A DNA stretch of 64,000 bases from Octopus sinensis (taxonomy: Eukaryota), in NCBI RefSeq assembly GCF_006345805.1, contig NC_043010.1, forward strand, positions 66,340,001-66,404,000. Reading direction: 5' to 3'. Below, piece by piece: positions 44,401 through 53,385 of this stretch (position 1 is its first letter; each line of letters starts with the position of its first letter). The notes under the pieces were generated by a model that searched no databases, had not been told where the DNA came from, and worked only from the letters and a program-made list of their open reading frames with translations. The translations under genes and the position numbers were made by a program.

Positions 44401-47400
44401 GGCGGAGAGACCTTTCTGTTAGCTGAAGAAACCAAAGTGTTTCACTGCAACATGTGTTTCACTGCTACATGTTTCACTGCTACATGTGATGTGTTCCTTC
44501 TTGCAGAGTATTCCTGATTCAAATTGTTCACCGAACAGTTCACGAAAACGCTCAAGGTCACCTCTACATAATGATTTGACCCCTAAAAAGATAAAAGAAA
44601 GTGAAGTAAGTAATGTTTTATTTAATATCTTTAATATTTCTCAGTATTCTCTGAGAACAATAGGTTTAGAAGGTGCAAACTTGAAAGGAATTATTTAAAG
44701 GGGTGGGAGGTCTTCTATTCAACAGTCAGTCCTGGTCAAGCATCAATGACATTTCAGCTGTCACTGCCCTTCTAGTTTGGTATATACAAGACTACATTAC
44801 TCTTTTATTGTGGCTATGCTGGAGCACTTCCTTGGAAGGTCTTAGTTGAACAACTTGACCCCAGGACTTATTTTTTAAGCCTATTAGTCTCTTTTGCTGA
44901 ACCACTAAGTTACAGGGTTGTAAACACACCAACACTGGTTGTCAAGTGGTGATGGGAGGAACAGATATATATACACACACACACACATACACAAATACAA
45001 TGGGCTTCTTTCAGTTTCTGCCTACCAGATCCACTCACAATGCTTTGGTCAGCTTGAGGCTTTAAGTAGAAGACACTTACCCAAGGTGCCATGCAGTTGG
45101 ACTGAACCCAGAACTATGTGGTTGGGAAGCAAGCTTCTTACCACACAGCTACACCTGTGCCTAAGAAATTACATGTCCTTTCATTTCAGGATGATTTGAC
45201 TGCTGTTTCCAGCACCAAGTAGCCATGCAAAGGTTACCTAATAAATTGGATGTCTTTTTATAAATTAATAAGAATTTGAAATATATTTCTTCCATTGGTT
45301 CAAGGCTACACACATTTAGGAAGGTTGCAGTTTTTAATTATTCAGATGTGGTGACATGGGCCTGAGAACCTTGGTGGTTTGCTGTGCTTACCACCAAGCT
45401 AAGTATGGTTGCCCTTGCATACAGGCGTGTCCCCTGCATCCCTCTCTAGCTGAGCATCCCTAATTTTGTGGGCTCGTAAGTGCTGGTGCTATGTAAAAAG
45501 CACCCAGTACACACTGTAAAGTGGTTGGTACTAGGAAGGGCATCCAGCCATAGAAACCATGTCAAAATAGACAGTGAGGCCTGAACAACACTTCAGGTGG
45601 TCATCTCCTGTCATGCCAGCTTGGAAAATGGACGTTTGATGATAATGGATGGATGAATGAAATTAAAGCTCTGTTCCTTTGCTTGGGAACAGGTGAGAGT
45701 TGGTGACAGGAAGGGCATCCAGCCATAGAACACCTGCCGTCTCTGTGAATTCCATCCGACCAATGCAAGCATAGGATAGTGGATGTGAAATGATGATTTG
45801 AAGGGAATTCTGCTACCAGTGTTTCGGTTAATTTCAAAAAGAATCAAGAATTTGAAGAAATTCAATAAAGTAGATAGCTCAGTAATTATTATTAGGTTTT
45901 GAACACTACAAAAAGTTGTTACATAAAAATCCTGATGGAAGGTTGTAATATAATCATGAAAACTTTAAAACATACTGTTTTGTATGATAGAATTGGTCAA
46001 TCCACATTACTCCGTAAGGAACATCAGGCTGGTTTCCTGGCTTCTCTGGTGTTTATATTCCTCCCTGGGACGAGATGCCAGTCTATTGCGGGATTACTCA
46101 TTTTTACCGGCTGAGTGGACTGGGGCAATGTGAAAGGAAGTGTTTTGCTCAAGAACTCAATACATCACCTGGTCCAGAAACTGAAACCACAGTTTTGTAT
46201 TTTTTTTTTCTACCAACTCCTTGAGATTGCTGCCCCTAATTCTCTCATAAGTGGAGGTGCTTGGCTTAGTGGTTAGAATTATGATTAGAAGATTCATTAC
46301 CATCATCCGTCATTTGACGTCCGCTTTCCATGGGTTGAATGGCTTGCCAGTCCTCAGTCAAACTGTCCAACCCATGCTAGCATGGAATGTGGACATTAAA
46401 CACTGATGATGATGATGATAAATTTTCTGATCACGATTCTGACCATTAAGCCATGCACCTCCACTTATGAGAGAATTAGGGGCAGCAATTTCATGGAGTT
46501 GGTATAAAAAAAAAAGGTTGAATTAAAAAAAAAAATCCTATTTTACTCAATAAAATATCTGAATCCCAAGGTTTTTGATGTCTCCTATTAATGGCATTGA
46601 ACTGGTAGAGTTGTTGGGGGTGGGACAGGATGCTCTGTGGCATTTATTATAACTGTTTGTGCTGATAGTTCAACTTTGCCTTTTATCCCTTTGAGAGTGA
46701 CATGAAAAGTAGTTCTATCAGTCCAAGATGGTAGATTGGTAGAACTAAGGAAATCAAACCAGACATCTTACAGCATTTCTTTCCATCTCTTTGTGTTCTG
46801 ACTTTAAATTCCACTGCGCTCTACTTGCCTGATAGACTTAGTCATTCACCAGTTTCTTCCAGCCAGGCCTCTGGTTTGAGGATAGCTTCTTTCCTCCATC
46901 CCGTCAATCTCAGAGGCTATGTAAACGGTCATGGACACTGCCCCTTTTCCCTCTTGAATAAAAAGCACTTAAGGGACCAGGTAATAGTATTAAACCAAGC
47001 ATTGGATTCATTGTCTTTTAATAAAGAAATTCACCCTGTTGACCATTGATGTCTGTTGTTCCTTCCAGAATGTTCCTGATTTGAATTCTTCACCCAACAA
47101 TGCAATGAAGCGTTCACAGTCACCAGTACTTAATGATTCACCTCCAAAACAGACGAAAGAAAATGAAGTAAGTAAATAAAAAATAAAAAAAACATAAAGA
47201 CTGTTTGATTATGCCATATCAGATTTGATCTTGAAGTGTTGAAGTATGAGGTCTCTTAGTTGTTGCTGTATTTTGCAGCATCCATGTCTACATAGCATAT
47301 AATGTAAGCATTCAAACACATTGTCATTATCTTTTCAAATCCTCACAGTCTAGGAAGGACCCTTATCTTTTTTCCTTTTACTTGTTTCAGTCATTAGACT

Positions 47401-53385: not shown

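Follow-up and report, generated by a model that had tools for sequence, protein, structure and literature searches.

A tandem array of six NLS2-type module exons in the canonical poly(A) polymerase gene of Octopus sinensis

A 64-kb stretch of Octopus sinensis DNA (NC_043010.1, positions 66,340,001 to 66,404,000; termed here the window, whose own coordinates are used throughout) was found, by comparison of a spliced gene model with database proteins, to carry one canonical poly(A) polymerase (PAP) gene on the + strand, in which six short tandem exons each encode a copy of the motif known in vertebrate PAP as the second nuclear localisation signal (NLS2). The ancestral state is a single module exon, the six copies are homologous to vertebrate NLS2, and the exons are conserved whereas the introns are not. 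We lean, to a modest degree, towards the reading that the array arose by tandem amplification of that single ancestral exon of a canonical nuclear PAP gene, and that it provides modules whose number is set by splicing and whose import activity can be tuned by phosphorylation.

Results

The six repeat exons, designated A to F, all lie on the + strand, and their existence and translations were confirmed by re-reading them from the sequence. Exon A (42177-42278, 102 nt) is degenerate; RKRIRSP is retained, but neither the second basic cluster nor the Cdk consensus site is left. Exon B (44507-44605, 99 nt) carries the full bipartite pattern KR-x11-KKIK and three Ser/Thr-Pro (S/T-P) sites including TPKK, and exon D (48326-48424, 99 nt) is a near-copy of it (95% at the nucleotide level), its protein being that of B with I2V. 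The remaining exons are of a second type, namely C (47069-47167, 99 nt) with KR-x11-KQTK and SPPK, E (50118-50216, 99 nt) with KQMK and the donor GAA/gtaacg (slashes mark exon edges), the weakest donor of the six, and F (51796-51897, 102 nt) with KQLK. Two repeat types, B/D and C/E/F, can therefore be distinguished, with A standing apart. The first-pass annotation, made from the letters of the window alone, had placed the array at 44507-51897, a range that holds for B to F and leaves out A, which lies 2.3 kb upstream of B. Eleven columns are invariant in all six repeats (P3, D4, N6, K14, R15, S18, P19, N22, D23, K27 and E31), among them the KR pair, the central SP and, in the second-cluster region, K27. 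Protein and DNA profile scans of the window, on both strands and in all six frames, detected no extra or degenerate copies beyond the six.

The array is located between a Ser/Thr-rich exon (exon 17) and the last exon, which is the position of NLS2 ahead of the ...LPD..SP...IxLxL tail. All six exons are 99 or 102 nt long with phase 0/0, and both exons bordering the array are also in phase 0 at those borders, so that each copy is frame-neutral. Each has an AG acceptor with a pyrimidine tract and a GT donor, within the range of the other 17 exons of the gene. The repeat-exon donors lack an exonic AG and are rather weak, matching the consensus at 5-7 of 9 positions, with those of E (gtaacg) and A (gtaaat) the weakest.

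Certain features of the surrounding introns were observed as well. In the intron between A and B, the + strand runs for 355 bp as pure (TCT/TCC)n polypyrimidine (42731-43086; TRF score 213-372), a tract that PTB-type splicing regulators could bind. Directly 5' of the exon B acceptor, at 44437-44488, lies a 17-nt tandem repeat, GTGTTTCACTGCTACAT, in 3.2 copies, likely the branch-point region, and the acceptor region of exon D holds a single diverged copy of this 17-nt repeat.

Each repeat exon had earlier been likened to the NLS2/Cdk-site module of vertebrate PAP, and this sequence homology was borne out. A vertebrate-only hidden Markov model (HMM) was built from 30 distinct PAPOLA/PAPOLG NLS2 modules, and each repeat was scored with it against 5000 composition-preserving shuffles of itself. 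Exons B to F obtained 14.5-22.7 bits, values reached by 0 of 5000 shuffles, with exon C as the top repeat (22.7 bits); exon A obtained 10.6 bits, reached by 3 of 5000. The alignment to the vertebrate NLS2 region that had been suggested as a check is significant for the repeats. In the other direction, an HMM of the six repeats matches one C-terminal spot in 76 of 120 metazoan PAPs, examples being Aplysia AASKRPGSPFHNDTPPKKSKELE, shark PAPOLG LNPSPNSSSSKRPHSPTLEESPKRLK and bird PAPOLA SPVTAVKRTSSPHKDDSPKKMK. PAPs of a priapulid, a brachiopod, nemerteans and annelids also contain KRPHSP..(S/T)PPKR, and a hemichordate has a variant, RKRPLSP...KRIR, from which the S/T-PPKR half is missing. On these data, the NLS2 motif, together with the S/T-P sites embedded in it, is pan-bilaterian.

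It has been stated that the C-terminal regulatory region of PAP is exclusive to vertebrates (PMC10908868), and this region is usually treated as a vertebrate feature. That statement is contradicted by the conservation of an NLS2-type motif and tail in molluscs, brachiopods, annelids, nemerteans, priapulids and hemichordates. The human NLS2 string given in the first-pass annotation agrees closely with bird PAPOLA VKRTSSPHKDDSPKKMKMEE (P0120). By eye, the C-terminal domain of bird PAPOLA holds only two strict S/T-P-x-K/R sites, SPHK and SPKK, and since both fall within NLS2, "NLS2/Cdk-site module" is a fair label at the sequence level.

The vertebrate background invoked for this module is confirmed in the literature (PMC10908868, PMC2241896, PMC6309179). 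In vertebrate PAP-alpha, NLS1 and NLS2 flank a Ser/Thr-rich region (PMC10908868, PMC2241896, PMC6309179). NLS2 is bipartite and required for nuclear localisation, its inactivation sending bovine PAP to the cytoplasm, and its lysines K656/657 are SUMO sites (PMC10908868). Cdk1/cyclin B phosphorylates consensus and non-consensus sites of the C-terminus and represses PAP in M phase (PMC2241896, PMC6309179; the bovine site mapping through secondary citations). The same C-terminus is a platform for U1A, U2AF65 and 14-3-3-epsilon (cited in PMC2241896). No solved structure containing NLS2 was found in the PDB.

With respect to the basic clusters, the first-pass annotation had pointed to two of them about 12 aa apart, a bipartite NLS pattern. 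Exons B and D bear this out, with KR followed by 11 residues and KKIK, in agreement with the consensus KRx10-12K[KR]x[KR] (or at least 3/5 basic residues). It does not extend to C, E and F, where the second cluster reads KQxK (2/5 basic), nor to A (1/5 basic), where the second cluster is gone and KRIR is kept. The 17 S/T-P sites across the six exons were recounted and stand, as do the five full S/T-P-x-K sites, TPKK in B and D and SPPK in C, E and F, with none in A. As sequence motifs, these amount to five full and 17 minimal Cdk1/cyclin B substrate sites. Their weight lies in conservation across copies and phyla and not in their count.

Exon boundaries were compared by mapping database proteins onto their own genomic loci. 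The module occupies one phase-0/0 exon in Lingula (102 nt) and in Aplysia (108 nt), and two tandem phase-0/0 exons in Mytilus (126 + 132 nt) and Saccostrea (120 + 126 nt). In fish PAPOLG it forms the 3' end of a 203-nt exon ending ...PPKRHKDTE/ in phase 0, and in bird PAPOLA the 3' end of a 221-nt exon that ends three codons earlier, KKMK/MEE. The 3' boundary of the octopus module, ...TPKKIKESE/, coincides with that of fish PAPOLG in aligned position and phase, whereas the 5' boundary is common to the lophotrochozoans only. The comparison of exon boundaries with vertebrates that had been proposed earlier gives a mixed outcome, with agreement at the 3' boundary (exactly with fish PAPOLG, three codons off with bird PAPOLA) and none at the 5' boundary. 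Because the 5' boundary is not common to vertebrates, the free-standing module exon is the lophotrochozoan state, one that lends itself to duplication.

Amplification of the module is not unique to octopus, and lower copy numbers are visible in public annotations. RefSeq isoforms X1-X4 of Crassostrea virginica contain 4, 3, 2 and 1 modules; those of Magallana gigas contain 3, 2, 2 and 1; those of Ostrea (edulis) and Saccostrea (cucullata) contain 2 or 1; and those of the gastropod Gigantopelta aegis contain 1 or 0. In the chiton Liolophura sinensis, one RefSeq isoform is without the first module. Among cephalopods, the transcript protein P0123, which is a cluster-mate of P0001 found on 8 transcript contigs, equals P0001 plus exactly 33 amino acids (aa), QEASQISSSPDSSRKRSLSPAKNDSPIKKSKDE, with no mismatches. 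From this difference it follows that the related cephalopod possesses no fewer than two modules and that inclusion of one of these is alternative.

Octopus-type units show more resemblance among themselves than to either module of that cephalopod, so that either the six-fold expansion is lineage-specific or the copies evolve in concert. Pairing of the octopus-type units with the two modules of the related cephalopod was attempted, and no clear pairing emerged. Among 5.8 billion clustered proteins, no match was obtained to the 200-aa concatenated repeats or to the C-terminal region, a single 33-aa motif being too short for significance in a library of that size, from which O. sinensis proteins also appear to be missing. 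A six-repeat profile run against 1.84 billion representatives returned two matches only, both to unrelated repeat proteins, in a library from which O. sinensis proteins are possibly absent. We found no paper describing molluscan NLS2-module arrays.

A separate case of C-terminal repetition was noticed in Solemya velum, whose PAP (P0018) has, in place of the usual tail, a different unit of about 24 aa (CPIPVQADVRYLSRQM.DTC...) repeated five times; the entry may be an annotation artefact, or else a further expansion of C-terminal repeats.

The history of the copies was approached through their similarity inside and outside the exons. Identity among the exon copies is 73-95% and drops to background in the 100-nt flanks (Fisher p 1e-7 to 1e-20). 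The copies resemble each other over the exon and about 20-100 nt beyond it, the remaining shared sequence being interspersed repeats in mixed orientation; larger duplicated blocks of exon and intron were considered and ruled out on this ground. The order of duplication is recoverable only as the pattern a-b-c-b'-c'-c''. Between the two types (B/D versus C/E/F) there is a synonymous excess, with a ratio of non-synonymous to synonymous divergence (dN/dS) of 0.13-0.35 (binomial p 2e-4 to 5e-3, with the pair BC at 0.05), and B and D differ by 4 synonymous changes and 1 non-synonymous change (dN/dS 0.06). With exons 73-95% identical amid unalignable flanking introns, and with the synonymous excess between the types, the repeat exons look maintained.

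The introns themselves are rich in interspersed repeats, including pairs 89-90% identical (43809-44037 with 52108-52335; 40257-40485 with 43620-43392), and hold hairpin-like self-complementary elements at 46200-46515, 51450-51583 and 38962-39066. Across the window, GC content is about 37% and microsatellites and interspersed repeats are plentiful; ARAGORN and Rfam scans found no tRNAs or RNA families in it.

The spliced PAP model, built against the cephalopod transcript protein P0001, comprises 858 aa on the + strand. Exons 1-16 (17285..36431, start codon at 17285, 507 aa) encode the catalytic, central and RNA-binding domains and the NLS1-equivalent. Exon 17 (38127..38483, phase 0/0) contributes 119 aa of Ser/Thr-rich sequence separating NLS1 from the repeats, and shares 46% identity with its counterpart in P0001. 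The last coding exon (53287..53385) encodes the conserved PAP C-terminal tail ...DVPELTSP...IRLKLK and the stop; it is 79% identical to the P0001 tail and homologous to the last exon of Mytilus, Aplysia and Lingula PAP, bird PAPOLA and fish PAPOLG. Pfam matches on the model are in canonical order (PAP_NTPase E 4.8e-79, PAP_central E 4.6e-69, PAP_RNA-bind E 1.6e-24), and the Pfam scan gave no match in its C-terminal part. This domain order is that of a canonical nuclear PAP (a PAPOLA/B/G orthologue), with 65-88% identity to metazoan PAPs. The closest database protein is P0001 (Logan transcript assembly, run SRR27666060), at 88% protein and 79.5% nucleotide identity, and the PAPs of other molluscs are 70-75% identical. 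The exon-intron structure is likewise conserved: the catalytic exon lengths (67/85/110/54/112/90/139/76/121/85/54/111/104/70) are those of Mytilus, Aplysia and Lingula and are nearly equal in bird PAPOLA and fish PAPOLG.

Two further features of the gene were recorded. The intron after exon 8 is of the GC-AG kind (donor 25695-25696, AAATG/gcatgt), no GT donor yielding the conserved ...FSKWSWPQP... junction. The NLS1-equivalent (exon 16, 36353-36431) is without the KKKK second cluster of vertebrate NLS1 (bird: KRRQLHQLLPNHVLQKKKK); as a matter of speculation, import might lean more on the NLS2 modules where NLS1 is weak.

Discussion

In the explanation that we propose, the ancestral exon would encode KR-x2-SP-x5-7-(S/T)P-x-K(K/R)xK-acidic, the motif of vertebrate NLS2. 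Since every copy is frame-neutral and homologous exons are cassettes in a related cephalopod and in other molluscs, splicing most likely decides the number and identity of modules in each PAP isoform, anywhere from 0 to 6. Going by motif rules and the vertebrate work, the modules would serve as import signals of the importin-alpha type, canonical in B and D, weakened in C, E and F and degenerate in A. Proline-directed phospho-acceptor sites are predicted to occupy the linker and the border of the second basic cluster; from this placement, phosphorylation by CDK or MAPK (mitogen-activated protein kinase) could tune import or PAP regulation, with the dose given by module number. The earlier claim that the motif has been multiplied is upheld as exon duplication; the rheostat drawn from it presupposes all copies in one protein, whereas copy number per mRNA is probably variable, homologous exons being cassettes in cephalopod, oyster, chiton and gastropod.

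A bolder form of the proposal, which we regard as rather unlikely, is a splicing dial in which module number and type set nuclear versus cytoplasmic PAP and the steepness of the CDK/MAPK response, the module having expanded independently in several molluscan lineages and furthest here. If true, such a dial could supply a cytoplasmic pool for polyadenylation in oocytes or neurons.

Several observations weigh against the proposed explanation. Only B and D conform to the strict bipartite consensus, and per 33-aa unit the S/T-P count is marginal in comparison with composition-preserving shuffles (p 0.03-0.10). The sites at which CDK1/ERK phosphorylation shifts PAP-alpha in mouse oocytes (S537, S545 and S558) lie in fragment 364-604, upstream of NLS2, and their effect is to activate PAP, not to inhibit it; no shift was seen for fragment 605-745, which contains NLS2 (PMC8191758). 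Within C/E/F, dN/dS is about 0.4-1.5 on very few changes, too few to show constraint copy by copy, and synonymous divergence (dS) is low (0.10-0.28) although the introns are unalignable past about 20-30 nt. This low dS suggests exon-limited gene conversion as well as it does purifying selection or constrained synonymous sites. Finally, the inclusion of the six exons in O. sinensis mRNA is presumed and not seen. The setting of module number by splicing nevertheless constitutes a better-supported working model than its rivals.

The rival that survives best, itself unlikely, takes all six exons as constitutive, giving a fixed six-fold array; phosphorylation of its many sites by Cdk1 would then act as a rheostat on import, or for shutting off polyadenylation in mitosis or meiosis. 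This rival is consistent with exons that share one reading frame among themselves and with the exons around them and have usable splice sites, with the 17 S/T-P and five full S/T-P-x-K sites, and with the inhibition of vertebrate PAP by multisite Cdk1/cyclin B hyperphosphorylation (PMC2241896, PMC6309179); multisite CDK control of NLS modules is moreover an established principle (PMC9385143). However, wherever isoforms of a mollusc lineage are available, a cephalopod among them, the homologous exons are alternatively included, and donors on the weak side without exonic AG are typical of cassette exons. In addition, A, C, E and F are not canonical NLSs, and no multi-repeat protein occurs in the 5.8 billion clustered sequences or the 1.84 billion representatives, where O. 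sinensis proteins are possibly absent. A multisite phospho-rheostat, as put forward by the first-pass annotation, is a hypothesis.

It is quite improbable that the main role of the modules is other than import, that is, as an RS-like (arginine/serine) or SUMO/acetyl-regulated docking platform (RKRSRSP, RSQSP) for splicing and 3'-end factors, whose avidity amplification would raise. The binding of U1A, U2AF65 and 14-3-3-epsilon by the vertebrate C-terminus, the SUMO sites at K656/657 of NLS2 and the retention in C, E and F of the RS/SP core under a relaxed NLS consensus would all suit such a role. Yet what is best conserved across phyla is two basic clusters spaced as in a bipartite signal, inactivation of NLS2 relocates bovine PAP to the cytoplasm (PMC10908868), and by eye the repeats fit neither 14-3-3 mode-I (P at +1, not +2) nor the psi-K-x-E SUMO consensus.

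Least probable of all is that most copies are unused pseudo-exons, with one or two spliced and the rest recent or homogenised by gene conversion, for although C/E/F have low dS with dN/dS near 1, similarity ends sharply at the exon edges as from short conversion tracts, A is without its second basic cluster, E has a weak donor and the related cephalopod's transcripts show at most two modules, all six copies retain open frames, AG/GT sites and pyrimidine tracts, the synonymous excess between the types implies that both were coding for most of their history, the residues invariant in all six (KR pair, central SP and K27) are functional module residues in other phyla, and the fully turned-over introns mean that the duplications are not recent.

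Returning to modules set by splicing, the lophotrochozoan NLS2 module can be described as a self-contained, frame-neutral exon that has been amplified repeatedly, up to six times here, and is cassette-spliced in relatives. A natural isoform series, from 0 to 6 modules, could serve to test the number of NLSs and proline-directed phosphorylation against PAP localisation and activity. Overall, the array is a clean example of the dosage of a regulatory short linear motif evolving by exon duplication, and it is not a new kind of system.

Comparison with known systems places it as follows. It resembles the NLS2 of vertebrate PAP alpha/gamma, a bipartite NLS that borders the Ser/Thr-rich regulatory domain on its C-terminal side (Raabe et al. 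1994, cited in PMC10908868), in family, position and motif order (KR, SP, (S/T)P-x-K in the second cluster, acidic residues), with a significant profile match, a 3' intron position and phase equal to that of fish PAPOLG, and the strict Cdk sites of PAPOLA inside the motif. The vertebrate NLS2, however, is present once and shares its exon of 203-221 nt, which starts in phase 1, with the coding sequence upstream of it, whereas octopus has six free-standing phase-0/0 exons; four of the six octopus copies deviate from the bipartite consensus, and their function is read from sequence alone.

CDK-regulated NLS modules in general, in which multisite phosphorylation beside or within a classical NLS tunes import (an example being the NLS-NES modules of PMC9385143), offer a likeness of layout only: S/T-P and S/T-P-x-K sites occupy the linker and the beginning of the second cluster of a bipartite NLS and are conserved together with basic residues; the octopus protein, unlike them, is known from its sequence, and its repetition is at the level of whole exons.

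Closest are the other molluscan PAP arrays (C. virginica, M. gigas, Ostrea edulis, Saccostrea cucullata, Mytilus trossulus, Liolophura sinensis, Gigantopelta aegis and the cephalopod pair P0001/P0123), which share with octopus phase-0/0 exons of 99-132 nt holding one module each and duplicated in tandem, and whose isoforms differ by whole modules. The bivalve units are longer, at 40-44 aa with a GSPMxVD lead-in against 33-34 aa in octopus, and copy number in these arrays is 1-4 in contrast to the 6 of O. sinensis.

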